Virus record (IMG/VR): IMGVR_UViG_3300035698_029839
Span: 1-64,000 of that record
DNA length: 64,000 bases
Reading direction: 5' to 3' (one strand)
Below, in pieces: positions 11,151 through 57,181 of the stretch (position 1 is its first letter; the number at the start of each line of letters is the position of its first letter). The notes beneath the pieces are model-generated. The model saw only the letters and a program-made list of their open reading frames with translations, had not been told where the DNA came from and made no database searches. Both the position numbers and the translations under genes were made by a program.

Positions 11151-11151
11151 T

Positions 11152-12342
11152 ATGAAAAGATATAAAAAGCCTATTTCTCAAACTCATAAAGAATTAATGA
11201 AAGAATGGGACTATGAGAATAATGATGAGTTAGGATTAGACCCTTGTAAAATAACTAGAGGGAGTCATAAGAAAGCGTTGTGGAGATGTAAAAGGGGACA
11301 TTTTTGGGAAGCCGAGATAGTTAATAGGGTTAATGGTAGAGGGTGCCCCTATTGTTCTAATAAAAAGGTTTGTAAAGAGAACTGTTTAAAAACCAAATTT
11401 CCTGAAATAGTTGAAGAATGGGATTACGAAAAGAATAAACAAATTACTCCTAAAAATATAATTTCTCAAAGTAGTAAAAAAGTATGGTGGAAGTGTAAAA
11501 AGGGACATTCTTGGGAATCTGAGATTGCTGGTAGGGTTAATGGTAGAGGGTGTCCATATTGTTCTAATAATAGAGTTTGTAAAGAAAACTGTTTAAAAAC
11601 TAAATTTCCTAAGATATCTAAAGAATGGGATTTTATTAGAAATGGAGAACTAACTCCAGAAACTGTAACTTATGGAAGTAGTAAGAAGGTATGGTGGATA
11701 TGCTCGAAAAATAAAGATCATAAATGGAAAATTTCAATAGCTCACAGAGCGAATGGAAGAAATTGTCCGTATTGTTCTGGCAAAAAGGTATCTAATGATA
11801 ATTGTTTGCAAACTAAATTTCCTAAGATATCTAAAGAATGGAATTTTTTTAAGAATGGAATTCTAACTCCTAAAAACTTGACGACAGGAAATGATAAGAA
11901 AGTTTGGTGGAAATGTTTAAGAGGTCATGAGTGGCAAGCAGCTATATATAGCAGGACTGCTGGTAATGGTTGTCCTTATTGCTCGCTTGAGGGGAGATCT
12001 GGTAAAAATCATTATTATTACAACCATAATTTAACAGATGAAGAAAGAATAAATAAAAGAAATAATAAAAAAACTCCAGTATGGCGAAAAGAGGTCTATG
12101 AAAGAGATAAATATGCGTGCCAAATTTGTGAAGATAATAGAGGAGGGAATCTTAATGCTCATCATCTTGAAGGATATAATCATAATAAAGAATTAAGATT
12201 TGAAAAAAATAATGGCATAACTCTTTGTAAGAAATGCCATAATGATTTTCATAATATTTATGGAAGAGGAAATAATACTACAAAGCAATTTAATGAGTAT
12301 AAAAAGAGTTGTGAATTGAATTGTGTTGAAGTTATTTATTAA
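11152..12342 (+). CDS. HNH homing endonuclease with four N-terminal zinc-ribbon repeats
   Basis: 4x EW...N...K(A/V)(L/W)W.C..(G/D)H.W...R..G..CPYC; C-terminal WRKEVYERDKYACQIC...AHH...NGITLCKKCHNDFH. Confidence 0.85.
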   Translation: MKRYKKPISQTHKELMKEWDYENNDELGLDPCKITRGSHKKALWRCKRGHFWEAEIVNRVNGRGCPYCSNKKVCKENCLKTKFPEIVEEWDYEKNKQITPKNIISQSSKKVWWKCKKGHSWESEIAGRVNGRGCPYCSNNRVCKENCLKTKFPKISKEWDFIRNGELTPETVTYGSSKKVWWICSKNKDHKWKISIAHRANGRNCPYCSGKKVSNDNCLQTKFPKISKEWNFFKNGILTPKNLTTGNDKKVWWKCLRGHEWQAAIYSRTAGNGCPYCSLEGRSGKNHYYYNHNLTDEERINKRNNKKTPVWRKEVYERDKYACQICEDNRGGNLNAHHLEGYNHNKELRFEKNNGITLCKKCHNDFHNIYGRGNNTTKQFNEYKKSCELNCVEVIY

Positions 12343-30981: not shown

Positions 30982-31120
30982 ATGTGATTTTTGTGGTAGG
31001 TTTATATCAATTAAAGATTTAGATGAAGGAAAAGCGTATATAAAAATGGTTACTCCTGATTCTCATTTCACAAAAGAAGAATACGAAACTAGTTGTAAAG
31101 AATGTAATAAGAAGGACTAA
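30962..31120 (+). CDS. Small Zn-finger protein (52 aa, not in ORF track)
   Basis: MKKKKFRCDFCGRF...SCKECNKKD. Confidence 0.5.
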   Translation: MKKKKFRCDFCGRFISIKDLDEGKAYIKMVTPDSHFTKEEYETSCKECNKKD

Positions 31121-31122
31121 TT

Positions 31123-32532
31123 ATGATTTTTGATAATAAAGATTATGTTCCGCTGCATTGTCATTCCGAATTTAGTCAATTTGATGGTTTGGCAAATATA
31201 AATGATCTAGCAATGCAAGCTAGGAAAATGGGTTTCCCAGCATGTGCTCTCACTGACCATGGTAATATTATGGGTTGGATTAAATGGCTTCAAGCATGTA
31301 GAGCCACAAAAGATAAGAAAGGTAAAGATATTCCTTATGCTCCTATTAAACCTATTCTAGGGTGTGAATTTTATTTATCTCGAAAGATGGATATAGGACA
31401 AAATCAAGAAAAAAGAGATACCGAAGTCATAAAAAAGAATCAACCTGATGGACGCAGGGGAAATAGACATTTAAATCTTTATGCTATGAATTTTGAAGGT
31501 TATAAGAATATATGCAATATGTCTCAAAGGTCTTATACGGAGGGATTTTATTACGATCCTAGAATTGATATCGATATGTTATCAAAGCATTCCAAGGGTG
31601 TTATGTGTGGTTCTGCATGTCTTTCTAGTGTTATTAATGCTAATCTAATGTATGGACGTTACAACCAAGCTAGAGAGACTTGTGGTATTTTAAACGAGAT
31701 CTTTGATGGTAATTTCTTTTTAGAGATGATGTACCATGGGATTAGTGAAGAAAAAGAAATTATTCCTTTAATTTTAAAATTGTCAACAGAATTAAATATT
31801 CCTGTTGTTTGTACCAATGATAGTCATTATATCCATAAGGACCAAGGAGCATCTCAAGAAGTTTTATTATGTATGTCTCAACAAAGATGTTTGAAAGATC
31901 CTAAAAGATTAAAATTCGGTCATATGGAATTTTATTTTAAGAGCGCGGAAGAAATGGCAGTTATGTTTGGACATGTTCCTCATGCTTTAACTAATTCTGT
32001 TGTTCTTGCTGAAAGAATAGATACTAAAGATATAGAGAAAAATCTTTTTGGAGGTATGAGACTACCTAAGTTTGATATACCTAAAAAATATAAAAATCCA
32101 TATGATTATATGTCTATTTTAGCATGGGAAGGAATGGAGAGAATTGGATGGGACAAAAGTAAAGAACATGTAGATACTTTAAAAATGGAATTAGAAGATG
32201 TGAAAGTTGCATATGAAAATAATAATTATGATTTCTCTACATATTTTTTAATAGTTAGAGATTATATATTAGAAGCTAAAAAGATGGGAACTTTTGTTGG
32301 TTGCGGCCGTGGTTCTGGGTATGCTAGTGTATTATTAAGATGTCTTGAAATTACTTATGGGGTAGATCCATTAAAGTACGGTCTTCTATGGGAAAGATTT
32401 TTGGGATTTGACTCCAAAAGGTTTATTAAAGAATCAGATTTCGGATTTGAAGAAGACTTGGTGCAACAAGCAGCAGATAGAGATTTGGAAGGAGATTTAG
32501 AGGAAGATTTAGGAGGCATTGATAGATATTGA
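31123..32532 (+). CDS. dnaE: DNA polymerase III alpha, fragment 1 (PHP domain and start of palm)
   Basis: LHCHSEFS.FDG, TDHG, PILGCEFY, TNDSHY, GCGRGSG, DPLKYGLLWERFL. Confidence 0.9.
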   Translation: MIFDNKDYVPLHCHSEFSQFDGLANINDLAMQARKMGFPACALTDHGNIMGWIKWLQACRATKDKKGKDIPYAPIKPILGCEFYLSRKMDIGQNQEKRDTEVIKKNQPDGRRGNRHLNLYAMNFEGYKNICNMSQRSYTEGFYYDPRIDIDMLSKHSKGVMCGSACLSSVINANLMYGRYNQARETCGILNEIFDGNFFLEMMYHGISEEKEIIPLILKLSTELNIPVVCTNDSHYIHKDQGASQEVLLCMSQQRCLKDPKRLKFGHMEFYFKSAEEMAVMFGHVPHALTNSVVLAERIDTKDIEKNLFGGMRLPKFDIPKKYKNPYDYMSILAWEGMERIGWDKSKEHVDTLKMELEDVKVAYENNNYDFSTYFLIVRDYILEAKKMGTFVGCGRGSGYASVLLRCLEITYGVDPLKYGLLWERFLGFDSKRFIKESDFGFEEDLVQQAADRDLEGDLEEDLGGIDRY

Positions 32533-32756
32533 TAGATACAGATATTAATTGGAATGAACTAACAGAGCAAGAGAGAGAGAAAATACTTCAAAAAATATTA
32601 TCAACAGAAGAAGGTCTAACTGCAATGGCTATGAGTATGGCTCCCTCGCAGAAGGGATATAAGGAAGCACAAGAAATATATATTAAAAAATATGGAAGAA
32701 TAAAAAAAGAAATACTTGTTCCTATAAATGATAGATTTGAAATATTGGATTTATGA
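32529..32756 (+). CDS. Small protein with RFEILDL tag
   Basis: Ends PINDRFEILDL; N-terminus similar to 32772. Confidence 0.6.
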   Translation: MIDTDINWNELTEQEREKILQKILSTEEGLTAMAMSMAPSQKGYKEAQEIYIKKYGRIKKEILVPINDRFEILDL

Positions 32757-32771
32757 AGGAAGAACTTACAA

Positions 32772-33065
32772 ATGGCTTTATCTGATTGGTCTGAAGAAAA
32801 CAAAGAAATAATTAAAAATGCTTTAAAAACGACAGAAGGAAGAGAAGGATTTAAAGAAGCTTTTTATGATACTGTAAATATTTCACTAGAAGATTATTTA
32901 ACGCAAACTTCTGAATCTTTAGGAACAGATGATTTAGAAAAGCATGTGCATAAAATAGTAGAAGATGTATCAGACATATTAGAAATAATTTATGAAAAAG
33001 ATGAAATAAAAGAAACAAAAATAGATAATCCTATAACTACCAGATTGGATATATTAGATTTATGA
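32772..33065 (+). CDS. Small protein with RLDILDL tag
   Basis: Ends PITTRLDILDL. Confidence 0.6.
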   Translation: MALSDWSEENKEIIKNALKTTEGREGFKEAFYDTVNISLEDYLTQTSESLGTDDLEKHVHKIVEDVSDILEIIYEKDEIKETKIDNPITTRLDILDL

Positions 33066-33319
33066 TTAAGGAAGAATTTAAACATGTTAAACTTTTTCCA
33101 ATGCAGGAAAATTTAATTGAAGAGATGGCAAAGGTTCAACCAATTGCAGACGAGTTAGAAGCACTAGGATATATCTATGCTCCGTACATTCCTTTGCAAA
33201 TATCTCTTACTCCTACTCTTAATATTTCTGATTTAATTACTCCCAAAAAATATACTATTAGGAAATATACAGATATTTATTCAGATATTGATAATAGATT
33301 TGAAATATTGGACTTATAA
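33062..33319 (+). CDS. Small protein with RFEILDL tag and a gp23-like GYIYAPYIPL peptide
   Basis: LGYIYAPYIPLQ; ends DIDNRFEILDL. Confidence 0.6.
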   Translation: MIKEEFKHVKLFPMQENLIEEMAKVQPIADELEALGYIYAPYIPLQISLTPTLNISDLITPKKYTIRKYTDIYSDIDNRFEILDL

Positions 33320-33321
33320 TT

Positions 33322-33642
33322 ATGAAATACAAAGTTGGCGACATAGTAAAAATAAAAACATGGGAAGCTATGGGGAGAGAGTTTATTTTTACGACTAGTG
33401 GGAATATATCAATACATAAGACTTCTCAGTATTCAACAGGGATGGAAGATCTTTTAAAAGAGATAGATACTAATAGGGTAGTAACAATATTAAAAGTGAT
33501 AGATAATGTTGTTCCCCCCAGAATACCTCATTACAAGATAGAAGAATTTGATGCTACATGGGTTTGGACAGATGAGATGATAGAGTGTAGTGCAGTGCCA
33601 GCAGTGCCGATACAAGACAGATTTGAGATTTTAGATTTATAG
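33322..33642 (+). CDS. Small SH3/KOW-like protein with RFEILDL tag
   Basis: YKVGDIVKIKTW...WVWTDEMI; paralog of 14576. Confidence 0.62.
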   Translation: MKYKVGDIVKIKTWEAMGREFIFTTSGNISIHKTSQYSTGMEDLLKEIDTNRVVTILKVIDNVVPPRIPHYKIEEFDATWVWTDEMIECSAVPAVPIQDRFEILDL

Positions 33643-33678
33643 TTTGTAAAGTGAAAGTTATTTTAATATATTTAAGTA

Positions 33679-34722
33679 ATGGCAGAAATCGAAACAAGAA
33701 AAAAAGAGATAATAGAATACGTTACTAAAAAACATTCTAAGAGCGACAAGTTATCTAAAATTATTTCAAAAGTTAAAGAAGAACTTGATGTTTTGGGATC
33801 AACTGATGGCTTAGAAGCAAAGAATAATTTAGAAGTATTTTATAATATATGGAAAAGTCATAAGGGCAAAGTAGGTCATAAGAATGATATAAATAGCTGG
33901 ACTGCTTTCTTTTTAGGCTTAACCAAAGTCAAACCTGATAAGGATTTTCTTCCTACCAGACGCGCTTTTGCAAGAGCTGGATTCCCTGATATTGATACTG
34001 ATTTTGATTATGAGAGCAGGGATAGTGTTTATACTTATATTATTGATAAATATGGTAGGGACAATGTGGGAAATATAGGAACTCATGGTTTGTTAAGATT
34101 TAAATCATGTGTCACTCGAGTTACAAAAGCCTTAGATTTAGCTAATGCTTATCATAAGGGGGACAGTCTTTTTGTTAGTGAGAATGCTGCAAAAGTGACT
34201 GAAATTTTATCACCTTTTCCCAAAAAAGGATTATTAAAAGTTACAGATGAAGATGGAGAAAGTCATCTTATAAAAACTTTTGAAGATGCATATGCGCATT
34301 GCTCTGATTTTAAGCACTATGTAGATAAGTATAAAGATAGTGGTTTTAAAAAATACATGGAACAAATTGAAGGCACTTTTGCTAATTTTGGATGTTTAGC
34401 AAAGGATACTCCTATTCTGACCGATGGAGGATGGAAAAGAATTGACCAGCTTTCTACCAAATTTTCTATAGCTTATATTAATAAGGATGGGGAAATTTCT
34501 TATACTGATAGATATAAAGCATTTAAAACAGGTAGAAAAAAAGTATATAGATTAAAACTTAAGGACGGTAGATTTATAGATGTGACTGATGAGCATCTTA
34601 TTTTTACAGATAAAGGATGTGTTAAATTTGAAGAAATTAGAAAAAATAAAGAAAATTATAAAATTTATGGAATAAAAAAGGATTCTTTGAAGAATGATAG
34701 GATTACTATACCAGCAGTGTGA
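33679..34722 (+). CDS. dnaE: DNA polymerase III alpha, fragment 2 (catalytic PDIDTD) fused to split-intein N-half
   Basis: FPDIDTDF...YIIDKYG...EGTFANFG, then CLAKDTPILT...VTDEHLIFT. Confidence 0.88.
   Translation: MAEIETRKKEIIEYVTKKHSKSDKLSKIISKVKEELDVLGSTDGLEAKNNLEVFYNIWKSHKGKVGHKNDINSWTAFFLGLTKVKPDKDFLPTRRAFARAGFPDIDTDFDYESRDSVYTYIIDKYGRDNVGNIGTHGLLRFKSCVTRVTKALDLANAYHKGDSLFVSENAAKVTEILSPFPKKGLLKVTDEDGESHLIKTFEDAYAHCSDFKHYVDKYKDSGFKKYMEQIEGTFANFGCLAKDTPILTDGGWKRIDQLSTKFSIAYINKDGEISYTDRYKAFKTGRKKVYRLKLKDGRFIDVTDEHLIFTDKGCVKFEEIRKNKENYKIYGIKKDSLKNDRITIPAV
34393..34719 (+). mobile_element. Split intein, N-fragment (109 aa)
   Basis: Block A CLAKDTPILT, block B DVTDEHLIF; no C-terminal HN in this ORF. 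Confidence 0.85.
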
Positions 34723-34743
34723 TTTCTTACAGGAGGTATAGTA

Positions 34744-35604
34744 ATGAATAAATGTAAAATTTGCGGTAAAGAATTTAATAAAAGAATTTCTTTAGAGAGA
34801 CATATAACTAGTTCTTATGGTAAAGAAAAGAAAAAAAAGCATTGTCCTATTTTAGTTTATAAGTGGAAGTATGAGAAAAATAATAGATTTTCTAAAAAAA
34901 GTTTGATTAAGATGTATATAAAAGATAAAAAATCTACGCCTATGATGAAAGAAGAGTTGCAAATTAATAAAAAAACTCTTTTAGATACTATGCATTTTTA
35001 TAAAATTAAAATGAGAAGTATATCGGAAGCTTCTAAAAACCAGATTGAAAGGGATGGCTTGTGGAATAAAGGGCTTACTAAGAGGGACCATCCATCTATT
35101 ATGTCTTATGCTAAGCAAAGAAAAGGGAGAAATAATCCTTATTATACTGCTCCTAATTTTGAAAAAAGAAAGAAAAGAAATTTGGAGATATTAAAAAAAA
35201 CTTGGAAAAGTTTTAATGGAAAAAGGAATCCTAAATCCACAGAAAGAAGAATGGCTAAGATTTTAGACCAAAATAATATATATTATATTAGAAATTTTTC
35301 ATTAAATTATTATGAAAATGGGAAAACCAAATGGAGATTATTTGATTTTTTTATTGAGGGAAAATTATTAGTAGAAATGAATGGTAATTATTTTCATGCT
35401 AATCCTAAAATATATAAAGCAGATGATGAAATAGTTATAGCTAAAAGCAAGAGAAAAGCGAAAGATATATGGGAATATGATGTTAAAAAAATGAAGCTGG
35501 GCAAAGATAGTGGCTATAAAACATTAGTTTTGTGGGAAGCGGATTTTGTAGAGATGACAGATAAAGAAGCAATAAAAGAAATTAGGAGTTTAATAGATGA
35601 TTAG
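34744..35604 (+). CDS. Free-standing homing endonuclease (Vsr/DUF559-like nuclease domain)
   Basis: NUMOD-like WNKGLTK, GRNNPYY; STERRMAKIL...FDFFIEGKLLVEMNGNYFHANP...LVLWE. Confidence 0.75.
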   Translation: MNKCKICGKEFNKRISLERHITSSYGKEKKKKHCPILVYKWKYEKNNRFSKKSLIKMYIKDKKSTPMMKEELQINKKTLLDTMHFYKIKMRSISEASKNQIERDGLWNKGLTKRDHPSIMSYAKQRKGRNNPYYTAPNFEKRKKRNLEILKKTWKSFNGKRNPKSTERRMAKILDQNNIYYIRNFSLNYYENGKTKWRLFDFFIEGKLLVEMNGNYFHANPKIYKADDEIVIAKSKRKAKDIWEYDVKKMKLGKDSGYKTLVLWEADFVEMTDKEAIKEIRSLIDD

Positions 35605-35845
35605 CGAAGAAAATGAATTGCCTGAAAAATTTAAAGAAGTAATGCATCGTGCTTTTAAAGATTGTGACGAATTTTATAATGAAATTAGGGATATTCCTAT
35701 TAGTAAAGTAAAAGATTTAACAAATATAATAAAACTTTTTAAATCAAATATCTCAAATGAAAATGAGCAGAGTTATATTATAGACGGAAAAAGGGTTTTC
35801 AACCTGGCCGATATTAAAGAGGTTCAAAAAAAATATAATGAGTAA
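35597..35845 (+). CDS. Hypothetical protein inside the split-intein locus
   Basis: ORF overlapping both neighbours. Confidence 0.5.
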   Translation: MISEENELPEKFKEVMHRAFKDCDEFYNEIRDIPISKVKDLTNIIKLFKSNISNENEQSYIIDGKRVFNLADIKEVQKKYNE

Positions 35846-35978
35846 TTTAAATTTGTTTAATATAGAATCAATTGAAGAATTAGATTTTGAAGATGTTTAT
35901 GATATTTCAATAGATGAAGATTGTGTTTTTTTTCAAAACGAGCATAATTATATAGCAAATAATATAGTTGTTCATAAT
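35838..35978 (+). mobile_element. Split intein, C-fragment (47 aa)
   Basis: VYDISI...HNYIANNIVVHN followed by Ser+1. Confidence 0.88.
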
Positions 35979-37685
35979 TCTCATGCTGCGGGTGTGGTCG
36001 TATCGGATGTCCCTCTTGATCAAATAGCTCCATTAAGAAATGCTAGGAAGGGAATGCTGGCTACTCAATTTCCTAGTGAAGATTTAGAACTTCTCGGTCT
36101 TATCAAATTTGATGTTCTGGCTATAGCCACTTTATCAGTTATTAAAAAAGCAGTAGAAATGATAAAAGAATATTGGGGGATAGAGATAGATGTAGAAAAT
36201 CTTCCTATGAATGATGAATCTACATTTGAAATTTATCGCAAGGGGAATTTGGGAGGAGTTTTTCAATGCGAAAAACATGGTATGCAAAAAACTATGAGAG
36301 ATATAGGGGTAGATCGTTTCGAAGATGTTATAGCTGGACTAGCACTACATCGTCCAGGCCCTATGGATAGTATTCCTGAGTATTGTGCCAGGAAACACAG
36401 GGAAAAAGATGTTGATTATTTTCATCCCTCAATTGAGCCATATGTAAAGCCTTATTTAGAAAGTACTTACGGTGTCCTTTGCTTCCAAGAACAGGTTATG
36501 CAAATTTGTAATAGTCTTGCTGGTTTCACAATTACTGATGGATATATTATGATAAAAGCGATTGGTAAGAAAAAAGAGCACTTGATGAAAAGATTCGAAG
36601 AACAATTTATTTCTGGTTGTGTAGAAAAAAAAGTTCCCCAACATGTTGCTCAGCAGTATTGGACTAAGTTTATTACTCCATTCTCATCTTATGGGTTTAA
36701 TTTGTGTCTTGATGGAAGCATGAGTGTTAAAAATAAAAAAGATGGAGAAATTTATGAAATTGAAGAATTAGAAAAAGAATTTAAAAAAGGAAATAAATTA
36801 GAAATTGTATTGGATAGTTATAAGGGAGGGCTTATTGTGGAAGATATAGTTGTTGATATATTTTGCACAGGTAAAAAAGATATTTATGAAATAGAATTGG
36901 ACAATGGGTCTATTTTAAAATGCACTTTGGATCATAAGTTTATATGTGATGATGGCAACGAGCATACAGTAAAAAAGATTATGGAAGAAGATTTAAATAT
37001 TTTATATTTTCAAGAAAATATGAAAAAGTGCAAAATAAAATCAGTTAAATATCTAGAGAAAAAAAAAGCATTTAATTTAACCATGAAATCAGGACAGCAT
37101 AATTATGCTCTTTATGATATGAATAACAAATGTAGTGTTATAAGTCGTAATTCTCATAGTGCATGCTATGGTTATAACTCTTATACAACAGCATATTTAA
37201 AAGCTAATTATCCTGATGAATTTATATGTTCTTTATTAGATGTGACGATAAGTGGTTCTCAAGGAGAGAGATATGATAAGGTTGCTGCATTTGAGAGAGA
37301 ATTTAAAAAGAAGATGAATATTAAATTTCTTTCCAGAGATATAAATAAATCAAAAGTATTGTTTACTATTGAGAAAAGAAAAGATCTTTCAGAAGGCGTG
37401 AAAAAAACAGAAATACGCCCTAGTCTTTTATGTAAGGGGCTTTTGAAAAAATCAGCTATGAATATAGAAGAAAATCAACCATATGATGATATGAGAGATT
37501 TTGTTAGAAAAACTAATTCGTCATTAATTGATATAAGGGTAGTGGAGGCTTTGACTACAGGTGGATATTTCGGGAAAAAGTATATGGAAGATCCATCTGT
37601 TATTGTGAAAGATTTTGTGATGATTAGAGAAGATATGAAAAAAACTGCTAAAAAAGGAGTAGAAACTGTCGATTTATTTGCATAA
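35838..37685 (+). CDS. dnaE: DNA polymerase III alpha, fragment 3 with N-terminal split-intein C-half and an internal mini-intein
   Basis: SHAAGVVV, GLIKFDVL, GVFQCE, RPGP, TYGVLCFQEQVM, YGFN|SHS, YLKANYP. Confidence 0.9.
   Translation: MSNLNLFNIESIEELDFEDVYDISIDEDCVFFQNEHNYIANNIVVHNSHAAGVVVSDVPLDQIAPLRNARKGMLATQFPSEDLELLGLIKFDVLAIATLSVIKKAVEMIKEYWGIEIDVENLPMNDESTFEIYRKGNLGGVFQCEKHGMQKTMRDIGVDRFEDVIAGLALHRPGPMDSIPEYCARKHREKDVDYFHPSIEPYVKPYLESTYGVLCFQEQVMQICNSLAGFTITDGYIMIKAIGKKKEHLMKRFEEQFISGCVEKKVPQHVAQQYWTKFITPFSSYGFNLCLDGSMSVKNKKDGEIYEIEELEKEFKKGNKLEIVLDSYKGGLIVEDIVVDIFCTGKKDIYEIELDNGSILKCTLDHKFICDDGNEHTVKKIMEEDLNILYFQENMKKCKIKSVKYLEKKKAFNLTMKSGQHNYALYDMNNKCSVISRNSHSACYGYNSYTTAYLKANYPDEFICSLLDVTISGSQGERYDKVAAFEREFKKKMNIKFLSRDINKSKVLFTIEKRKDLSEGVKKTEIRPSLLCKGLLKKSAMNIEENQPYDDMRDFVRKTNSSLIDIRVVEALTTGGYFGKKYMEDPSVIVKDFVMIREDMKKTAKKGVETVDLFA
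36705..37151 (+). mobile_element. Contiguous mini-intein in DnaE (149 aa)
   Basis: CLDGSMSV...CTLDHKF...VISRN|S interrupts the YGFNL-SHS motif. Confidence 0.82.
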
Positions 37686-37728
37686 AAGTTTGAAAAGTGA
37701 TTGTTATTACATTAAAAAGTAGTTGTAT

Positions 37729-37935
37729 ATGAACATAATAAAATGTCCTGAATGTGGAAGTGAAGATTTGTTTGTATATGACATCGATGGGTGTATTAAA
37801 GAGGGTAGAATTATCGAAGAAACGGAGTGCTTGAAATGCAATCACATTTTTACCGTAAAAGCAGAATTATCTAAAATAGAAATAGAGATAGAAAAGGAGA
37901 TAAAAAAATGCCAGAAGAACATAAAACTACTTTAA
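37729..37935 (+). CDS. Small Zn-ribbon protein
   Basis: CPECGS...CLKC. Confidence 0.5.
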   Translation: MNIIKCPECGSEDLFVYDIDGCIKEGRIIEETECLKCNHIFTVKAELSKIEIEIEKEIKKCQKNIKLL

Positions 37936-38222
37936 GATTAGAGATAGATAAAACTATCCAGCCAAAACAATATGAGCCGATTAAGATTCAATTATCTATT
38001 GAAGAAAGTCTTTTTTGGAAAGACGAAAAAGACAGAGAAGAGAAAATAAAATTTTGTTCAGAAAAAATTACAAAAGATTTTATTAAAGCCTTTGATCATG
38101 TTGTTGCAGAAATAGGAGAAAAGGATAGATGTATTGCAATAGTAAATGGTTCTGGAAAAGTTACTGATAAAAAAGAACAAGTTGTTTCTTCTTCTCCTGA
38201 AGAAGAATGGGACTTTAGTTAA
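37908..38222 (+). CDS. Hypothetical protein
   Basis: AAGGAG RBS; KQYEPIKI motif; acidic W tail. Confidence 0.55.
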   Translation: MPEEHKTTLRLEIDKTIQPKQYEPIKIQLSIEESLFWKDEKDREEKIKFCSEKITKDFIKAFDHVVAEIGEKDRCIAIVNGSGKVTDKKEQVVSSSPEEEWDFS

Positions 38223-38236
38223 AATAGGTGTGAATT

Positions 38237-39457
38237 ATGACAAATGAGAATAGTTTACAAGAATTTGAAGATATGTTCAATCTATCTTCTAAAGATGAGG
38301 AAAATGGTCAAGCAGAAGAATATGGACATAGCATGAATTCTAAAGAACCATTTGAAAAGTTAGTAGAAGATGTAAGAGAGGATATAAAACAAGTTGAAGA
38401 TAAGGGTAGTTCTTTAGAAGTTGAAGATAAGGGTAGTTCTTTAGAAGTTGAAGACAAGGGTATTTCTTTAGAGGTTGAAGATCCTCATGATATTGTTAAG
38501 GATGTTGCGTCAAGAAGTAGTGAAGATGACCAAGATATTGTAAGCCCTGTTGAGGGTGTAGCTAATGTTGAAGAAGAAGATTTTGATTCTCTGCCCGACC
38601 AAGAGATAAAAACAGAAGAGATAAGAGAAATAGTAAAAGACATCAACGATTTTCATAGTGATATAAAAGTTGAAGAAGAAAAAGAGCAAGAAGAAAAAAA
38701 GAAAGAAGAGACAGAGAAAAAAGAGACGGAGAAAAAAGAGACGGAGGATGGGGAAACATCTCCTCTTGATAAGATTACCGTAGAAAGTTTCTCCATACTT
38801 GATGGTGACAAGATTAGATGGTCTTTAAAAAGTCCTTCTACTATGTACGATCCTTTTTATAGGCAAAAGAAAATAGTATTAGATAGTTGTCTTGCTGGGG
38901 GGCAGGTAGAATGCTCTTCGTGGAATGAAGAATTAAGAGATGCTCAAGTTAATGTAATTACTGAAGTTTTTGATCAACAAGTAATTATCAAACAAATGGA
39001 AGAAGTACAGCAGTTTAGAAATAGGGTTAAGTATATTGGTGTTAGAGTTAATAACCAATATTTCTTGTTCGATAGGTTTACACCCTTGTTGAGGGGATAT
39101 CTGGCAAGAATTCAATATTTAAAACCTGTTCTTAAGCAAGATGGTCTTATTTTAGAGCATATGGGCGATGTTGAAATGTATTTTGAAAGGTTGAGGGGTT
39201 TGCATAAATCTGTTGCTGATACAGAAAAGAATTTAGCAGCGGCTTATGAAATGCTTAGTAGAAAAGTAACTATTTGTATGGAACTTCCCCCTGTTGAAAG
39301 ATATAACAAACCAGAAGCTACACCATATCATTCTAAATTTTCAACTTCCAAAGAAATTACACCTTCGGAACTGGACGATTTTGATAATCTTCCTGACCAT
39401 GCTGAGGCAGGCCCATTAGAGAAAAAGAGTGGGGCAATTAGTTGGAACGAAATTTAA
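38237..39457 (+). CDS. Hypothetical protein (acidic low-complexity N-half, helical C-half)
   Basis: ORF track; lies upstream of SSB and RecA. Confidence 0.6.
   Translation: MTNENSLQEFEDMFNLSSKDEENGQAEEYGHSMNSKEPFEKLVEDVREDIKQVEDKGSSLEVEDKGSSLEVEDKGISLEVEDPHDIVKDVASRSSEDDQDIVSPVEGVANVEEEDFDSLPDQEIKTEEIREIVKDINDFHSDIKVEEEKEQEEKKKEETEKKETEKKETEDGETSPLDKITVESFSILDGDKIRWSLKSPSTMYDPFYRQKKIVLDSCLAGGQVECSSWNEELRDAQVNVITEVFDQQVIIKQMEEVQQFRNRVKYIGVRVNNQYFLFDRFTPLLRGYLARIQYLKPVLKQDGLILEHMGDVEMYFERLRGLHKSVADTEKNLAAAYEMLSRKVTICMELPPVERYNKPEATPYHSKFSTSKEITPSELDDFDNLPDHAEAGPLEKKSGAISWNEI
38393..38482 (+). repeat. 27-bp in-frame tandem repeat, about 3.3 copies (VEDKG[S/I]SLE)
   Basis: GTTGAAGATAAGGGTAGTTCTTTAGAA units. 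Confidence 0.9.
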
Positions 39458-44263: not shown

Positions 44264-46153
44264 ATGAAAGATTTTGAATTTTATAAAACAATTCGTTTTT
44301 CAAGTAATAAAGAAAAGATAGTAAAAGCATTTTCTAAATTACATAATCTATATCATACTATTCCTGATACAAAAGGGTGTTTGGATAACATCAACATAAA
44401 AGGAGCAGGCTGCAAAGCTTGGTGTTGTCGTATCCAAACACCCCAGTTTTTATATTCGGAATTTCTTTTAATTTGGAATTTTGTATCTAAAAATTGGGAT
44501 GATAATGACGTTTGTGATTTATTTGAAAAATGTATGTTAAATGCTGTTAATCCCGTCCCTTCCAAGGGGTGCGTATTTTTTGATGAAGATCTTTGTATGT
44601 GCAGAGTTCATAAAATAAGACCATATAATTGTTTTTTGCCAGAAACATGGGTTTATACAAAAAATGGTCCAAGAAAAATAAAAAGCATACTTACGGGAGA
44701 TGAAGTTTACGGAAAAGATGGAAAACTTTACAAAGTTAAAACAACAGCATCTTCATATCATAATGGGTTAGTATATAATGTGAAATATCAGGGAAATAAA
44801 ATAGATTCGTGGTGCACTGGAGATCATAAATGGTACGTAGATAGCAGAAAGGACAAAAGAAAGAAAGTTAATTTATTATGGGAAAGGGCAGAAAACCTCG
44901 TTAGTAAAAAATGTAAAAATTATGGGAATTATTTATCTATTCCTTATATCTACGAAGATAATGATAATTTAAATGAAATAATAGTAAATGATTTTATAAA
45001 AGCAAAAGAAGAGGGAGGGCGTTTAAAACCATTTACTGGAGGAGAAAACGGGGATGGAGATTTTACAAAATCATTGCCATTTAAAATAAAAATAGATGAA
45101 GAGTTTTTATTTATGATAGGGATATACTTGGCAGAAGGGAGCAGCTCAATTATGTCCGCTTCTTTTTCTATGAACATAAATGAAAAACATCATTTGTTAA
45201 GGATCGAAAAATATATAAATAGTTTAGGTATTTTGTGCTCTTGGCCAAAAATAAATCATAGTAAAAAGCTTATTGTTTTAAGAGTTGGATCTTGTTTATT
45301 TGCTCGTTTAATGACGGAAATAGGAGGAAAACTAGCTAATAAAAAAAAGATTAATAAAAAACTTTTTGGAAAATTTTCTTTTTTACAATTGAAAAAAATA
45401 TATGAAGCATGGAATATGGGGGATGGGAAAAAGAAAATGCCTGAAGGAGAGGCTTCTACTGTTACTGTATCTGAACTTCTGGCATTGCAAATGAATTTTA
45501 TATTAATAGCTAATAATATATTTTCAAGAATTTATAAATATAAAAGAAAAGACAGAGGATTTTGTAGTTATGATGTGCATGTTTTTCCATCTTGCAACGG
45601 ACAAAAAGTAAAAAAAGGACAAGGAACAAAGATAATACAAGCAAATGATAAATTTATAATACCATTGGATGATGTAAAAACTAAATATTATAAAGGACCA
45701 GTAATTGATATTCAAGTTGAAAATGCGGAAAGTTTTATTACTTCTTCAGGTATAGTTCATAATTGTCGAATTTATGGCATAACTCCTGCTGAAGAATTCG
45801 AACCAAGATATTTGCGTTTAAAAGAAGAATATAAAACTATTTTAGGGGCGGTTATTAAGCCACAATGTTCTTTAGTATCTACTATTGATGATATAGGATT
45901 AACAGTAGAAGATACTGATAAGTGGTGGGCCAAACTTGTTAAAATTGAGCAATCTATTGGTATCCCTAAAGATATGGTTACAGATGCTATAGGAGGAAGT
46001 TATAGAACTCCTCATGATCATATTCTGCTTTATAATATGCCAGAAAATGTTCTTAATGCTTTGTCTGGGATAAAAAAATATACAGATGAATTTGAAAAGA
46101 AAAAAAGAATTAGGGAATTAATACAGGTGATTAAAAATGTCTTCAAAAGTTAG
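44264..46153 (+). CDS. YkgJ-family Cys-cluster protein interrupted by a LAGLIDADG intein
   Basis: C...CKAWCC...GCVFF...CRVHKIRPYN|intein|CRIYG. Confidence 0.8.
   Translation: MKDFEFYKTIRFSSNKEKIVKAFSKLHNLYHTIPDTKGCLDNINIKGAGCKAWCCRIQTPQFLYSEFLLIWNFVSKNWDDNDVCDLFEKCMLNAVNPVPSKGCVFFDEDLCMCRVHKIRPYNCFLPETWVYTKNGPRKIKSILTGDEVYGKDGKLYKVKTTASSYHNGLVYNVKYQGNKIDSWCTGDHKWYVDSRKDKRKKVNLLWERAENLVSKKCKNYGNYLSIPYIYEDNDNLNEIIVNDFIKAKEEGGRLKPFTGGENGDGDFTKSLPFKIKIDEEFLFMIGIYLAEGSSSIMSASFSMNINEKHHLLRIEKYINSLGILCSWPKINHSKKLIVLRVGSCLFARLMTEIGGKLANKKKINKKLFGKFSFLQLKKIYEAWNMGDGKKKMPEGEASTVTVSELLALQMNFILIANNIFSRIYKYKRKDRGFCSYDVHVFPSCNGQKVKKGQGTKIIQANDKFIIPLDDVKTKYYKGPVIDIQVENAESFITSSGIVHNCRIYGITPAEEFEPRYLRLKEEYKTILGAVIKPQCSLVSTIDDIGLTVEDTDKWWAKLVKIEQSIGIPKDMVTDAIGGSYRTPHDHILLYNMPENVLNALSGIKKYTDEFEKKKRIRELIQVIKNVFKS
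44630..45763 (+). mobile_element. Intein with LAGLIDADG endonuclease (378 aa)
   Basis: CFLPETWVYT, CTGDHKW, IGIYLAEGS, AWNMGDG, SGIVHN|C. Confidence 0.9.
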
Positions 46154-46820: not shown

Positions 46821-49805
46821 ATGGCTTTAGTTTTAAATAGATATCAAAAAGAAGCAGTATTTCATAAAGATGGTCCTTGTTTGGTCACTTCTTGTCCAGG
46901 TTCTGGCAAAACTTTTACTCTTGTAGAAAGAATTGTTTGTTTAATAAAACATGGTGGAGTAAAACCTAAAAATATTTTGTGCCTAACATTTACGAACAAG
47001 GCGGCAAACGAAATGAAAGAGAGGGTTTGTAAAAGGCTCAATATAGATAAATTAGATTTTTTTGTAGGTACTTTTCATTCTCTTTGTGCAAAAATGCTTA
47101 GGAAAATAGGTCCTTCTCAAGGGTTAAAAGTTAATTTTAGTATTATAGATGACAGAGATCAAATTGATTTAATTATGCAAATAGCAAGGAAGCTTGAAAT
47201 AAAAATAGAAAAAGGCGATGCTTTTAAAATAGCTAATCGTCTTAATTTCTATAGGGATCAAATGGAAGATTTTGGATGGGTAGAGGATAATTTAAATTCG
47301 GAACCGTTCATCGATATAGCAAAAGAATATTTAAAACATTGTGATAAGAACGGTCTTTTAGATTTTAGTGCTCTTATATATAAAAATATTAAAACGATAG
47401 AGTCTGATGATGATTTGAAAAGAAAAATTCAAAATACTTTTAAATACATTATGGTTGACGAGACACAAGATACAAATAAATCTCAATTTTATTTAGTTAA
47501 TCTCTTGGGAGGAAGATGGAAAAATATAATGTTGATAGGAGATATTGATCAGTGTGTTATAGAAGGAGAAAGAGTTTTAACTAATGATGGATGGAAAAAA
47601 ATAGAAGATATAAAGAAAAAAGAGGAAGTTATATCTGCCTCTGGTGGTGGTAAGGTTTCTTCGGATAAAGTTCTTAATAAGTATAAGAAAAAAGTTTCTA
47701 ATCGTCCTATTGTTAGATTAAAGACTAAATCTGGATTTCATATGACTATGACAAAAGAGCATATGATTTTTGCAGACTATGTTAAATCATCTTCTAAAAA
47801 GATAATAGTATATTTAATGTATGATAGAGAATTTGGTTATCGTGTAGGAGTTACTAATACAAAACGCAAACATGGGAAAAATGGAGAAGGACTTGGAGCT
47901 AGGTTACAGCAGGAAAGAGCGGAATATTTATGGATTTTAAAATCTGTTGATAGTATTGATGATGCAAAATACTGGGAGCATTATTTTTCTGTTAAATATG
48001 GTATTCCTACATGGTGTTTCTATAGCAATAAAAAACAAAGAAATTTAGATTATTCAGATGAAAGTATTAAAAAACTTTTTTCTTCTATCAACACGGTTAA
48101 TAATGCAAAGAAATTAATGGAGGATTTATGGTTGTTTGAAGAACGACCACATTATGTCCCAAAATGCATGTGTAAAAATAAGCGTAGGAATTTTACTATC
48201 AATATGTGTGCTGATTCTCGTTCAGGTACTTTGCATAGATATATGATATCTGGTTCTGATGAAAAAGATGGGGAAATGCTTAAAGAGGCAGGGCTGAATG
48301 TGAGAAGTAACGGAAAGGGAAGAAGGGGATGGAGAGTAGATTCTGCTTTGAAATCTATAAATAAAATTTATAATATTTTAAAACTAACTAAAGAGACATT
48401 AGGATATGTTAACATTATAGAAAAAGCTCGTTTTTGTGAAGAAACTCTTTCTTTAATACCTGCTTCTCATTTGAAAGAAGGTATGGCAGTTTATGTTGGT
48501 GATGAAAATGGTGTTTCTATCGATTATGTTGAGTCTATAGAATTTGATTATTATGATGGTAACGTTTATGATATTGATGTTGATAATTATCATAATTTTA
48601 TAACCAATGGGATTGTAAGCCATAACTCGATCTACGGTTGGAGAGGAGCAAGATATCAGAATATCCAGGATTTTATAAATAATTATTCTGATTGCAAAGT
48701 TATTTCTCTTTCTAAAAATTACAGATCTACACCCCAAATTGTTGAGGTGGCAAGGAAATTAATTAAATTAAATACAAGTCATATGGGTACTGCTTTTGAG
48801 ACTGATAATAAAGATGGGGATAAAGTTAAATGTTATTCTTTTAGAGATCAATACGCAGAAGCCAATTGGGTTGGAAATACAGCTAAGAAAATTATGGGAG
48901 AAGGGGGTTGGGACCCTTCTGATATAGCTGTTCTTTATAGAGCTAATAAAATGTCAGAACCTATTGAACAGGCATTGGTTAATAATGCTATACCTTATGA
49001 AGTTATAGGAGCATGGAATTTTTATGATCGTAAAGAGGTAAGAGATTGTCTTGCTATGTTAAAGTTATTAGCTAATCCTAGGGACGGAATTGCTTTTGGT
49101 AGAATTTGTTCTTTTGTAGATGGTATGGGATCTATTACTATAGGCAAAATAGAGAATATAGCTCAAGATAAGAATATAAGTATTCCTCAAGCCTGTAAAA
49201 TAATGGGAGATAAAGCAAATAGTATCAATATTTCTAAGGGTTGTGAAAAACTTCATAGTATTTATAGTAGTAAATGGGATCATACAAATCCTGCTGGTTG
49301 TTTGTCTAAATTGATTAATAATTTTAATTATGAAAGACATTTATTAAAAAAGTTTAATGATACTGCTAGCGAGAGAAAAGATAATGTTTCTCAAATAGTG
49401 TCTTCTGCTGGAGAATGTAATGGAGAAACAAATGGAGTGAGTAAATATCTTCAGCAAGTTTCTCTTATTACGAATGCGGACAAAGATAATAAAGATGATA
49501 AGATGTCACTGATGAGTCTTCATGCATCCAAGGGATTAGAGTTTCCTATTGTATTTATGATAGGTGTGGAAAGTGATTTATTGCCTCATAAGAACGCTAT
49601 GTCTGAAGATCCATATGCTGGGCTTGAAGAGGAGAGAAGATTGTGCTATGTGGGTATGACAAGAGCTAAGAAGGCTTTGCTTTTAAGTTGGTGTCAAAGA
49701 AGACGAAGATTTGGTAAGCATGGAGATGTCTCTTTTAATAAGTGTAAGCCAAGTAGGTTTTTATATGAGTCGGGAATATTAAAGAAAGGTCAATATGAAT
49801 ATTGA
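46821..49805 (+). CDS. uvrD: UvrD/PcrA SF1 helicase with intein
   Basis: PGSGKT, TFTNKAA, GTFHS, VDETQD, GDIDQ|intein|SIYGWRGA, NYRS, HASKGLEF, EERRLCYVGMTRA. Confidence 0.92.
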   Translation: MALVLNRYQKEAVFHKDGPCLVTSCPGSGKTFTLVERIVCLIKHGGVKPKNILCLTFTNKAANEMKERVCKRLNIDKLDFFVGTFHSLCAKMLRKIGPSQGLKVNFSIIDDRDQIDLIMQIARKLEIKIEKGDAFKIANRLNFYRDQMEDFGWVEDNLNSEPFIDIAKEYLKHCDKNGLLDFSALIYKNIKTIESDDDLKRKIQNTFKYIMVDETQDTNKSQFYLVNLLGGRWKNIMLIGDIDQCVIEGERVLTNDGWKKIEDIKKKEEVISASGGGKVSSDKVLNKYKKKVSNRPIVRLKTKSGFHMTMTKEHMIFADYVKSSSKKIIVYLMYDREFGYRVGVTNTKRKHGKNGEGLGARLQQERAEYLWILKSVDSIDDAKYWEHYFSVKYGIPTWCFYSNKKQRNLDYSDESIKKLFSSINTVNNAKKLMEDLWLFEERPHYVPKCMCKNKRRNFTINMCADSRSGTLHRYMISGSDEKDGEMLKEAGLNVRSNGKGRRGWRVDSALKSINKIYNILKLTKETLGYVNIIEKARFCEETLSLIPASHLKEGMAVYVGDENGVSIDYVESIEFDYYDGNVYDIDVDNYHNFITNGIVSHNSIYGWRGARYQNIQDFINNYSDCKVISLSKNYRSTPQIVEVARKLIKLNTSHMGTAFETDNKDGDKVKCYSFRDQYAEANWVGNTAKKIMGEGGWDPSDIAVLYRANKMSEPIEQALVNNAIPYEVIGAWNFYDRKEVRDCLAMLKLLANPRDGIAFGRICSFVDGMGSITIGKIENIAQDKNISIPQACKIMGDKANSINISKGCEKLHSIYSSKWDHTNPAGCLSKLINNFNYERHLLKKFNDTASERKDNVSQIVSSAGECNGETNGVSKYLQQVSLITNADKDNKDDKMSLMSLHASKGLEFPIVFMIGVESDLLPHKNAMSEDPYAGLEEERRLCYVGMTRAKKALLLSWCQRRRRFGKHGDVSFNKCKPSRFLYESGILKKGQYEY
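47553..48626 (+). mobile_element. Intein in UvrD motif III (358 aa) with a non-LAGLIDADG insert
   Basis: CVIEGERVLT, MTKEHMIF, VYDIDV..YHNFITNGIVSHN|S. Confidence 0.9.
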
Positions 49806-55939: not shown

Positions 55940-57181
55940 GTGGTGGGAAGAAAGTTAACAACAAAATTCACAACAAAAGAATTTATAGATAAGGCTATTT
56001 TGACCCATGGAGATAAGTATGATTATAGTGAAGTAGATTATAAAAATCAACTAACGAAAGTTAAAATATTTTGTAAAAAACATAAAATATATTTTCATCA
56101 AATCCCAAAAATACATTTTACTGGAAGTGGATGCAGAGAATGTGGTAAAGAAAAGGTAGGAGAAATAGTCGGGGACAGAAGTAGATTGACAAAGGAGCAA
56201 ATTATAGAAAGGGGTATAGAGGTTCACGGCAATAGATATGATTACTCTGAAGTTGAATATATAAATTACAACACTAATATTAAAATATTTTGTAAAAAAT
56301 GTAGGAAATATTTCTTACAAACTCCTCTTCATCATATTCTTGCGAAAAAACAATGTCCATTATGCTCTCCCCAAAAAAAGTTTTATTATTCATTCCCTAA
56401 AAAACAGAAATCATTAAAAATTACTGGAAGGGATACATTTATTAGAGAAGCAAAAAATATTCATGGGAATAAATATGAATATTTCGATGTTGATTTTAAA
56501 GGCATGAAAATAAAAATTAAGATATTTTGTAAAAAGCATAAAAAATATTTCTTCCAAAGTCCATATAATCATTTAAAAGGATCTGGATGTCGTCAGTGTG
56601 GGACAGAAAGAATGGTTGCAAAAAGGTCTTTTAGTAAAGAAGATTTTATAAAAAGAGCAAAATATATTCATGAAGATAGATATGATTATTCTAAAGTTAA
56701 ATATATTAATATGAAAATTAAAGTAAAAATTAAATGTTTAAAGCATGGAATATATTTTTATCAGCGTCCAAATGGGCATTTGGTGGGGCAGGGGTGTCCA
56801 TTTTGTCTTAAAAAATATGAGGGTAAAGCATATGATATAATAAAAAATATATTTAATGATTGGGATGTTCAACGTCATAAAAAGATTTGGCATTCATATA
56901 GGAATTATAATCATAAAAGATTTTGTGATTTTTGGTTGGAAAAAGATGATATTAAAATTATGGTTGAGTATGATGGAAAACAGCATTATATGCCAGTAAG
57001 ATTTAACGGTATGGCTGTTGGAAAAGCAAAAATAAGATTTAAAGAGCAACAGAAAATAGATAAATTAGATACTGATTTTTGTAAAGAAAATAATATTATT
57101 CTTCATAGAATAAAATATAATGAGGATGAGAAAAAATCAATTGTTGGACTAAGGAGTAAAGTCGATAATTTATGGAATTAA
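55940..57181 (+). CDS. Free-standing endonuclease with four DUF723-like Zn repeats and a Vsr/DUF559-like nuclease
   Basis: 4x (F/I)I......H..(K/R)Y(D/E)Y..V....K.KI.C.K...F.Q.P..H....C..C; CDFWL...VEYDGKQHY. Confidence 0.8.
   Translation: MVGRKLTTKFTTKEFIDKAILTHGDKYDYSEVDYKNQLTKVKIFCKKHKIYFHQIPKIHFTGSGCRECGKEKVGEIVGDRSRLTKEQIIERGIEVHGNRYDYSEVEYINYNTNIKIFCKKCRKYFLQTPLHHILAKKQCPLCSPQKKFYYSFPKKQKSLKITGRDTFIREAKNIHGNKYEYFDVDFKGMKIKIKIFCKKHKKYFFQSPYNHLKGSGCRQCGTERMVAKRSFSKEDFIKRAKYIHEDRYDYSKVKYINMKIKVKIKCLKHGIYFYQRPNGHLVGQGCPFCLKKYEGKAYDIIKNIFNDWDVQRHKKIWHSYRNYNHKRFCDFWLEKDDIKIMVEYDGKQHYMPVRFNGMAVGKAKIRFKEQQKIDKLDTDFCKENNIILHRIKYNEDEKKSIVGLRSKVDNLWN

Follow-up and report, generated by a model that had tools for sequence, protein, structure and literature searches.

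The window analysed here, the first 64,000 nucleotides (nt) of the 297,710-base virus record IMGVR_UViG_3300035698_029839, encodes DnaE, the alpha subunit of DNA polymerase III (Pol III), in three separate pieces, two of which carry the halves of an intein. We hold it very probable that this is a "fractured" huge-phage DnaE, in which a mini-intein lying in the palm domain directly before the HAAG motif has been split, so that its N-terminal half (N-intein) ends fragment 2 and its C-terminal half (C-intein) begins fragment 3, with a free-standing EDxHD nuclease gene and an orphan open reading frame (ORF) in the gap. A sequence-only reading of the window had proposed a split intein in a phage DnaE with its halves parted by a free-standing nuclease, and comparative, structural and fold evidence agree on that proposal. 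The features of the split region are as follows (aa, amino acids).

33679..34392, + strand: N-extein of DnaE fragment 2, 238 aa; palm with an intact FPDIDTDFD; Pfam DNA_pol3_alpha positions 68-160
34393..34719, + strand: N-intein, 109 aa, net charge +9; Cys1 and block B TDEH, with C239, T303, D304 and H306 invariant
34702..34745, + strand: RNA hairpin with an 11-bp stem and an inner stem; -15.8 kcal/mol, z -3.4
34744..35604, + strand: predicted free-standing endonuclease gene, 286 aa; N-terminal C2H2 zinc finger, helical middle, C-terminal Vsr-like EDxHD domain
35597..35845, + strand: orphan ORF82, 82 aa; overlaps the nuclease stop by 8 nt and the fragment 3 start by 8 nt
35838..35978, + strand: C-intein, 47 aa, net charge -11; block F DVYDIS and block G VVHN
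35979..36704, + strand: first part of the C-extein, with Ser+1 (TCT), HAAGVV, the palm end (region of the third catalytic Asp, LIKFDVL) and the fingers; maps from Taq 574

The gene halves are separate ORFs with their own stop and start, 1.1 kb apart. Fragment 2 (33679-34722, 347 aa) runs through EGTFANFG into the N-intein, which begins CLAKDTP. Fragment 3 (35838-37685, 615 aa), which holds the remaining palm, the fingers and a helix-hairpin-helix domain, opens with the C-intein, whose terminal VVHN is followed at once by Ser+1 (TCT, 35979-35981) and HAAGVVV. The junctions first read from the sequence (EGTFANFG/CLAK, with 109 aa after it, and 47 aa ending VVHN/SHAAGVVV) proved exact on rechecking, and the coordinates of the 286-aa endonuclease ORF and the 82-aa ORF between them were confirmed. 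Pfam Intein_splicing matches the N-half at residues 246-323 of fragment 2 with an E-value (5.9e-4) weaker than the curated cut-off, and in a genome scan positions 114-155 of the Pfam family match the C-half (E 1.1e-5). The nearest solved intein by sequence is gp41-1 (PDB 6QAZ; E 1.3e-3). The two halves are oppositely charged, the C-intein containing 5 D and 6 E with no K or R and the N-intein 25 K/R against 16 D/E, and the earlier counts (11 D/E and no K/R in a C-half facing a net basic N-half) are thus exact.

The insertion point can be read from a relative in which it is empty. In L004, whose N-extein is 84% identical to that of the window, fragments 2 and 3 form one 657-aa ORF reading FANFG-C-HAAG with no insert, so the insertion in the window is exact. 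Two other intein-less alleles, P0057 and P0058, read FG-S-HAAG with no change in length; taking out the insert therefore restores the motif EG....G-x-HAAGVV, as had been predicted. More distant relatives have G-I-HAAG and S-V-HAAG at this site. The fused L004 protein aligns with the Pol III alpha of Taq and of M. tuberculosis from about residue 380, and the junction aligns to Taq S573-V574-H575-A-A-G, which places the insertion between S573 and V574 in the palm. This position falls between the first two catalytic Asp residues (Taq D463 and D465, counted from the alignment) and the third, which we take to be D618 and where the alignment shows an LLKMDFL block. The site had been said to differ from the cyanobacterial one, and it does: the split intein lies about 240 residues upstream of the cyanobacterial site beside FNKSH, and it does not occupy the cyanobacterial DnaE position before C-F-N-K-S-H in the fingers.

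All of the residues that protein splicing would call upon are present in the two halves. At the N-terminal end, the nucleophile at position 1 and the T-x-x-H motif are represented by C239, T303 and H306, which are invariant in 19 aligned homologues, while the C-terminal end has block F, the block G His-Asn and a nucleophile at +1. These halves belong to a sizeable family. A metagenome search with the N-intein found at least 33 other clusters of 320-350-aa DnaE fragments that end in a homologous N-intein (identity 53-90%), some of them on contigs up to 491 kb, and Cys1 and block B T-D-x-H are invariant among the aligned N-inteins. With the C-intein as query, at least 17 fragment 3 proteins matched, and the C-inteins of all 17 listed end in HN followed by S or C. 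The charge polarity is common to the family, with the N-half at net -1 to +16 and the C-half at -6 to -13. The family has its limits: among 1.84 billion library representatives, no more than 8 clusters fell below 1e-10, and beyond them came generic inteins in other proteins. A protein search of a GenBank phage collection with the N-intein returned only terminase inteins at 30-34% identity and no phage with this intein, although close relatives may be missing from what was searched, and a nucleotide search of GenBank phages with the whole locus gave no match.

Three runs of complex prediction gave the two halves a score of 0.71, while the best of 3 controls scored 0.00. The mark that the halves reached is also attained by 51 of 78 solved complexes, and by 2 of 108 mismatched pairs. 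The prediction supports binding of the halves to each other as a model would, and together with the sequence matches it suggests a HINT fold for the split intein. No second DnaE, PolA or PolB was found in the 297 kb examined. Because the catalytic positions are intact, binding is predicted and no other replicative polymerase was found, functional trans-splicing of fragments 2 and 3 is considered very likely.

The N-intein of the window has one peculiarity. Relative to L021 and L022, a single nucleotide has been deleted after 34688, in a T-run, and the ancestral TAG stop is thereby bypassed, so that the N-intein ORF runs on into the 5' arm of the hairpin and gains about 11 extra, unrelated residues (about 34687-34719). 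As this tail is a product of the deletion, the functional N-half would be about 98-101 aa, like that of the relatives. The same deletion is found in a separately assembled contig of run X1 and is thus probably genuine, not an error of assembly.

The gene between the halves encodes a protein that, judged from profile and model matches, belongs to the Vsr-like EDxHD homing-endonuclease family of I-Bth0305I. Its EDxHD domain covers approximately residues 165-286, and D201, E211, H218 and D246, invariant in 21 homologues, follow the order expected from Vsr D51, position 62, H69 and D97, a correspondence of order without residue-by-residue superposition. A single-sequence search of the PDB with the nuclease returned only noise and zinc fingers, so the family profile was needed, and this matches the I-Bth0305I catalytic domain (PDB 3r3p) at E 1e-3. 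With an AlphaFold2 model of the nuclease (pLDDT 82), Foldseek placed 3r3p_A first (probability 1.00, TM 0.66 by target), followed by the E. coli Vsr structures 1cw0 (probability 1.00) and 1vsr (0.99), every E-value being above 1e-3. Of the earlier label "Vsr/DUF559-like", the first part is upheld by these profile and fold matches and the second falls away: Pfam DUF559 has no match in the window nuclease and matches 2 of the 21 homologues (best E 0.0034). All 21 members have a C2H2 zinc finger at the N-terminus with helices after it, and Pfam reports no NUMOD family in the nuclease, which departs from the EDxHD family in its NUMOD/helix-turn-helix part. By sequence, the zinc-finger N-terminus is a variant domain architecture among EDxHD nucleases. 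The 43 homologue clusters are all about 280 aa long and have no precomputed Pfam domain save two zf-C2H2 matches. The nuclease is single-copy in the genome, and its homologues stand directly after the N-intein gene in 8 of the 8 loci whose contigs were read. The "fractured gene" layout that had been recognized in the window (split intein, nuclease between, same strand) is the arrangement of Dassa et al. (2009; PMC2677866), and it recurs in 7 further loci. The nuclease most likely cuts the DnaE alleles of co-infecting relatives that do not have the nuclease gene.

The hairpin at the start of the nuclease gene has its 5' arm within the codons of the N-intein tail, and its 3' arm takes in the final two G of the nuclease's GGAGG ribosome-binding site together with the AU of the AUG. 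It is present in 7 other homologous loci. An alignment of the 8 loci has compensatory changes at 6 of the 15 hairpin pairs; pairing is kept in 91% of its cells, and this falls to 25-61% once the partners are slid. The hairpin probably holds down translation of the nuclease. Visual inspection of the hairpin sequence, without a pattern search, did not show the late-promoter box TATAAATA of Dassa et al. (2009); a promoter and terminator scan of 31000-38000 found no more than in shuffled sequence (41 vs 38.4 and 1 vs 2.3).

ORF82, which follows the nuclease, has no Pfam, PHROG or Atlas relative and no copy elsewhere in the genome, and none of the relatives retrieved carries it. We take it as probable variable cargo that may couple translation into fragment 3. 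In L020 the nuclease and fragment 3 overlap directly by 4 nt, whereas in the window both overlap ORF82 instead. Other loci hold other genes in this gap. A D12-class N6-adenine DNA methylase follows the nuclease in L007 and L018 (4355-4918) according to Pfam, and one in L019 (4349-4639) was assigned via its similarity to that of L018; the cargo of L007 (7856-9261) also includes a PD-(D/E)xK nuclease, which with the methylase is possibly a restriction-modification pair. L021 (4365-4688) and L022 carry unrelated orphan ORFs. The 449-aa gap ORF of L008 (6998-8347) has DxAAGxG and NPSY motifs and is methylase-like by eye, and a Pfam scan of it gave no match.

Taken over the whole family, the site is found in the following states.

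Empty site, with C, S or A at the junction: L004 and P0057-P0060
Contiguous mini-intein of 160-162 aa with Ser+1: P0036, P0038, P0046 and P0055 (P0054 is also contiguous, with a shorter linker)
Split, halves 31 nt apart with nothing between: L009
Split, with nuclease: the window, L020, L021, L022 and L023
Split, with nuclease and Dam-type methylase: L018 and L019
Split, with nuclease, methylase and PD-(D/E)xK nuclease: L007
Split, with an unrelated 449-aa ORF: L008

Read tentatively as stages of gene breaking, these would be an empty site with a Ser/Cys "scar", a contiguous mini-intein, adjacent split halves, split halves with a nuclease, and split halves with a nuclease and cargo. A quick maximum-likelihood tree was made for the C-extein (36 rows, with many forks unresolved): split, contiguous and intein-less alleles are interleaved on it, and at least 10 state changes are needed. 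It contains two well-supported sister pairs that each combine a split with a contiguous allele. The intein-bearing rows of this tree show 5 Ser/Cys changes at +1, where Ser is encoded by TCN and Cys by TGY, one transversion apart. Nucleotide identity to L021 also varies along the locus: it is 67-83% in the N-extein, 91-96% over the 3' end of the N-intein, the hairpin and the 5' end of the nuclease, 81-93% through the nuclease, and 70-84% in the C-intein and C-extein. This peak of identity, the patchy distribution and, in distant relatives, the closer likeness of the intein halves and nuclease than of the exteins fit homing with co-conversion, as far as sequence comparison can indicate, though constraint could contribute. 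L021 and the intein-less L004 share IMG sample number 3300024259. A wider proposal can be offered as a tentative one that we think rather less likely to be right than wrong, namely that this one site preserves all of the gene-breaking stages that Dassa et al. (2009) only inferred, that the states interconvert repeatedly while the +1 residue flips between Cys and Ser by a single transversion, that the split gap serves as a phenotypically silent "landing pad" by way of which the nuclease carries cargo between diverged huge phages, and that the intein is naturally tolerant of both nucleophiles.

Several observations weigh against a working, mobile split intein at this locus. The window has Ser+1, as opposed to Cys in several relatives and in the nearest intein-less allele, and nucleophile swaps often slow splicing in engineered inteins. 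The frameshift tail on the N-intein, as read from the sequence, is a further point on this side. The complex prediction may lean partly on the model's memory of solved split inteins. The record is incomplete (completeness estimate about 62%), and the missing part could hold another polymerase. In distant relatives the intein halves are 47-62% identical and the nuclease 51-57%, compared with 27-55% for the exteins; such higher conservation of the intein could reflect constraint instead of transfer. The coarseness of the C-extein tree likewise tempers what is drawn from it.

The Ser+1 residue and the frameshift tail bear most directly on the possibility that the halves merely dock the DnaE fragments non-covalently, as a dimerisation module that makes no peptide bond, the chemistry having been lost, for example, through Ser+1 or through the tailed N-half. 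Such docking gains some plausibility from fragment 1, which already has to assemble without an intein and would show that the polymerase tolerates non-covalent pieces. It is nevertheless improbable, given that Ser+1 is the majority state in the intein family, that Cys1, T-x-x-H, the terminal H-N and an S or C at +1 are kept across dozens of diverged sequences in which they would otherwise drift, and that an unspliced HINT domain of about 150 aa would sit inside the palm between the catalytic aspartates.

A polymerase gene decaying after a hit by a selfish nuclease, with replication left to the host polymerase or to one encoded in the unsequenced part of the genome, would accommodate the incompleteness of the record, a gene in three pieces with two inteins, and the altered end of the N-intein. 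All three ORFs, however, are intact with their catalytic motifs, and the split has been kept while the exteins diverged to 27-42% identity, which needs long purifying selection; with neither PolA nor PolB in the 297 kb examined, we regard decay as very improbable.

Removal of the insert as RNA, by a group I intron with an EDxHD gene like the I-Bth0305I recA intron, or an assembly artefact that conceals a contiguous intein, has next to no probability. In its favour are the known occurrence of EDxHD endonucleases in group I introns, the lack of any protein related to the 249-nt ORF82 region and the existence of contiguous alleles of the HAAG-site intein. Against it, an Rfam search of 34300-36100 gave nothing, even with E allowed up to 10, shuffled sequence folds as well as the ORF82 region does (z +0.66), the overlap of the L020 nuclease stop with the fragment 3 start leaves no room for an intron core, and the same architecture is present in at least 8 contigs from different samples. 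The group I intron reading was dropped on the Rfam result and the unstructured ORF82 region. With regard to assembly, Logan contigs (made by another assembler) from a salt-lake run, X1, cross both split-gene junctions without mismatch, record 3 covering 34477-34785 and record 5 covering 35539-35905, at a depth of about 3-5x and possibly from the same reads as the window. Reassembly into a single contiguous ORF, the outcome that would have spoken against a split gene, is therefore not what these contigs give. Three Logan "joints" that were considered as nuclease-free variants were rejected, having sides of only 21-27 nt and, in two cases, lying on high-depth contigs; they were put down to unrelated sequence.

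A split gene joined by trans-splicing thus accounts best for the boundary between fragments 2 and 3, and the rest of DnaE adds a second break and a second intein.

31123..32532, + strand: DnaE fragment 1, 469 aa; PHP domain and palm start; Pfam PHP 1.1e-40, DNA_pol3_alpha positions 3-98
32529..33642, + strand: gap between fragments 1 and 2, occupied by four small ORFs (75, 97, 85 and 106 aa), all ending in R-F/L-D/E-I-L-D-L
36705..37151, + strand: second mini-intein, contiguous, 149 aa, with no endonuclease domain; at YGFNL/SHS
37152..37685, + strand: last part of the C-extein; helix-hairpin-helix domain, Pfam HHH_6 3.2e-08

Fragment 1 aligns to residues 3-422 of M. tuberculosis DnaE1; at its end the catalytic PDxDxD motif is present as a degenerate copy (SDFGFEE), together with an acidic tail and GGIDRY. 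The first 95 or so aa of fragment 2 partly duplicate this end, the duplicated palm overlapping by about 45-60 residues: fragment 1 has the good GRGS...ERFL copy, the degenerate catalytic motif and the conserved GG(I/V)DRY end, and fragment 2 a diverged GRGS...ERFL copy and the intact PDIDTDFD. From its sequence the break looks like gene fission through duplication and decay. The break and the fragment 1 tail are kept in relatives L004, L005, L006 and L008, and in L020 fragments 1 and 2 are fused (628 aa). What fills the gap differs by relative, with six small ORFs in L004, a 215-aa ORF in L005 (resembling Clp protease by eye, not scanned) and nothing in L008. Because no intein is present at this break, fragment 1 must join the others non-covalently. 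The C-extein, for its part, matches Pfam DNA_pol3_alpha at positions 212-260 and DNA_pol3_finger at 5.7e-50.

The C-terminal heptapeptide R-F/L-D/E-I-L-D-L, followed directly by the stop, is shared by 26 small ORFs (43-263 aa), all on the + strand. Those in the window end at 14845, 29320, 29883, 30585, 32756, 33065, 33319, 33642, 51123, 51922, 52374 and 62723, and 14 more lie elsewhere in the genome, at 161-294 kb. The residue before the tag is usually D or N, only 2 internal occurrences are found, and relative L004 carries the same tag as RFEILDI. Its synonymous codons vary freely, so that the constraint is on the peptide and not on the DNA. A Pfam scan of eight of the tagged proteins found nothing above the curated cut-offs. 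The tag looks like a short linear motif for a hub (clamp, protease adaptor or sorting signal).

The contiguous mini-intein in fragment 3 lies 4 residues downstream of the cyanobacterial DnaE split site and has Arg instead of His as its penultimate residue. L004 does not have it and reads YGFNLAHS. In L005 (5941-8373) an intein 52% identical to it is found two residues further on, at YGFNRAH/SCS, with the length of the spliced product unchanged; as the positions differ by two, these are homologous inteins at neighbouring but different sites. Inteins also occur outside DnaE: a UvrD-type helicase (window 46821-49805) contains one of about 350 aa, at about 47574-48626 (Intein_splicing 3.5e-14), a 629-aa ORF (window 44264-46153) has weak Hint matches, and a 1204-aa ORF outside the window (genome 127384-128820) has two intein matches.

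The DnaE locus lies within a replication module whose other members are a DnaB-like helicase, a DEAD-box helicase, RecA, a primase and the UvrD-type helicase. The window has a G+C content of about 30% and almost every gene on the + strand, and the public runs that bear the locus are labelled salt lake metagenome. On the 3' side of DnaE, a 406-aa ORF (window 38237-39457) with about 3 copies of the tandem peptide repeat VEDKGSSLE is kept in relatives and belongs to no Pfam family. Further off, a 404-aa protein (window 11128-12342) has four DUF4379 treble-clef zinc-finger repeats (4.4e-78) and a second protein (window 55940-57181) one weak copy. A 2065-aa protein (window 1348-7545) contains Laminin_G_3 and Kelch beta-propeller domains and may serve in host recognition or as a structural component.

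If the locus works as proposed, a single transcript would serve for the translation of the DnaE fragments and the nuclease. Drawn together electrostatically, the basic N-half and the strongly acidic C-half would fold into one HINT domain, in which Cys1, the TDEH block, the terminal His-Asn and Ser+1 would perform protein trans-splicing, joining FANFG to SHAAGVV to give a continuous palm. The contiguous mini-intein downstream would splice in cis, and fragment 1, having no intein, would assemble non-covalently. Meanwhile the hairpin over part of the ribosome-binding site and the start codon would repress translation of the nuclease, which, once made, would cut the cassette-less DnaE of a co-infecting relative, and repair would then copy the cassette in. 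Making the replicative polymerase would thus take three polypeptides, one trans-splicing and one cis-splicing reaction, and a non-covalent association.

For intein biology, the value of the family is that one site can be compared in all states, which makes the 2009 model (a nuclease invades an intein and the gene breaks) testable with real allele pairs. For protein engineering, it supplies a further candidate Cys1/Ser+1 split intein with a strongly acidic 47-aa C-half, together with natural Cys+1 and Ser+1 variants. Orthogonal split inteins are already plentiful, with 15 in one published library, and the practical gain from this one depends on its splicing rates.

In kind, such a locus is already known, since a fractured DnaE with a split intein and a Vsr-like nuclease was published in 2009. 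Dassa et al. (2009; PMC2677866) describe "fractured" phage genes that include three metagenomic DnaE loci (DnaE-1, -2 and -3), one with a Vsr-like nuclease and one with an additional intein. They also report gp41-1 and gp41-8 with a positive N-intein and a negative C-intein, as well as hairpins in 15 of 16 endonuclease leaders, which they link to the translational repression shown for a gene-fracturing endonuclease of phage Aeh1. To judge from those descriptions, the present locus shares with the DnaE loci a phage-type replication enzyme, a split intein, a free-standing nuclease between the halves and insertion points other than the cyanobacterial one. It shares with DnaE-1 an additional in-frame intein in the same DnaE, and with the loci more generally an RNA hairpin before the endonuclease start and a last gap ORF that overlaps the C-intein gene. 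Like DnaE-2, it has a Vsr-like endonuclease, although that of DnaE-2 is at least 315 aa long, compared with 286 aa here. Unlike the loci as described there, it comes with a 297-kb genome context and an extra orphan ORF between nuclease and C-intein, and its family includes intein-less, contiguous and nuclease-free alleles at the same site. An attempt to tie NCBI-sourced homologues to the GOS loci of that study was abandoned, as the records derive from later metagenome assemblies and gave no link.

Among characterized inteins, gp41-1 is the closest in type, being naturally split, phage-like, metagenomic and part of a fractured gene, with a positive N-half and a negative C-half. It reportedly also combines Cys1 with Ser+1. 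Its halves, at 88 and 37 aa, are shorter than the approximately 98-109 and 47 aa seen here. The host protein differs (a helicase there, DnaE here), the sequence similarity is weak and local, and gp41-1 stands out by its measured, very fast kinetics. The cyanobacterial DnaE inteins (Npu, Ssp) share the Pol III alpha host, the naturally split class 1 type, Cys1 and association by opposite charge. They differ in lying in the fingers by FNKSH with Cys at +1, rather than in the palm before HAAG, in their opposite polarity, and in having halves encoded far apart with no endonuclease between them; no close sequence relationship to them is detectable. The reversed polarity that the sequence-only reading stressed is real and family-wide, yet it is no novelty, as gp41-1 and gp41-8 already show it and a structural analysis puts the polarity of gp41-1 opposite to that of Npu DnaE (Beyer et al., bioRxiv 10.1101/546465). 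The step from reversed polarity to orthogonality is weak, because a charge swap in Npu DnaE alone did not abolish cross-reaction (Beyer et al., bioRxiv 10.1101/546465). Low sequence identity, as it appears from the alignments, is a better reason to expect orthogonality than charge.

The nuclease and its surroundings have their own counterparts. Taylor et al. (2011; PMC3239194) defined the Vsr-like EDxHD family, which Dassa et al. (2009) had been the first to predict. The predicted nuclease resembles I-Bth0305I (PMC3239194; PDB 3R3P) in its Vsr-like C-terminal fold, its conserved acidic, His and Asp residues, its carriage by a phage and its tie to a self-splicing element in a DNA-metabolism gene; I-Bth0305I, in contrast, lies inside a recA group I intron and has a NUMOD/helix-turn-helix N-terminus, where the present protein is free-standing and has a C2H2 zinc finger. 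The Pseudomonas jumbo phage MIJ3 (PMC6892783) likewise has its polymerase gene broken at a putative split intein, with Ser+1 and a free-standing homing endonuclease between the halves, but there the polymerase is PolB, the nuclease HNH and the first intein residue Ser, as against DnaE, EDxHD and Cys here. Set beside these systems, what is new, provided that the locus does not coincide with DnaE-1, -2 or -3, is a populous family at a defined palm site in huge phages, together with its full allelic series, its natural Ser/Cys variation at +1 and its zinc-finger variant of the EDxHD nuclease.

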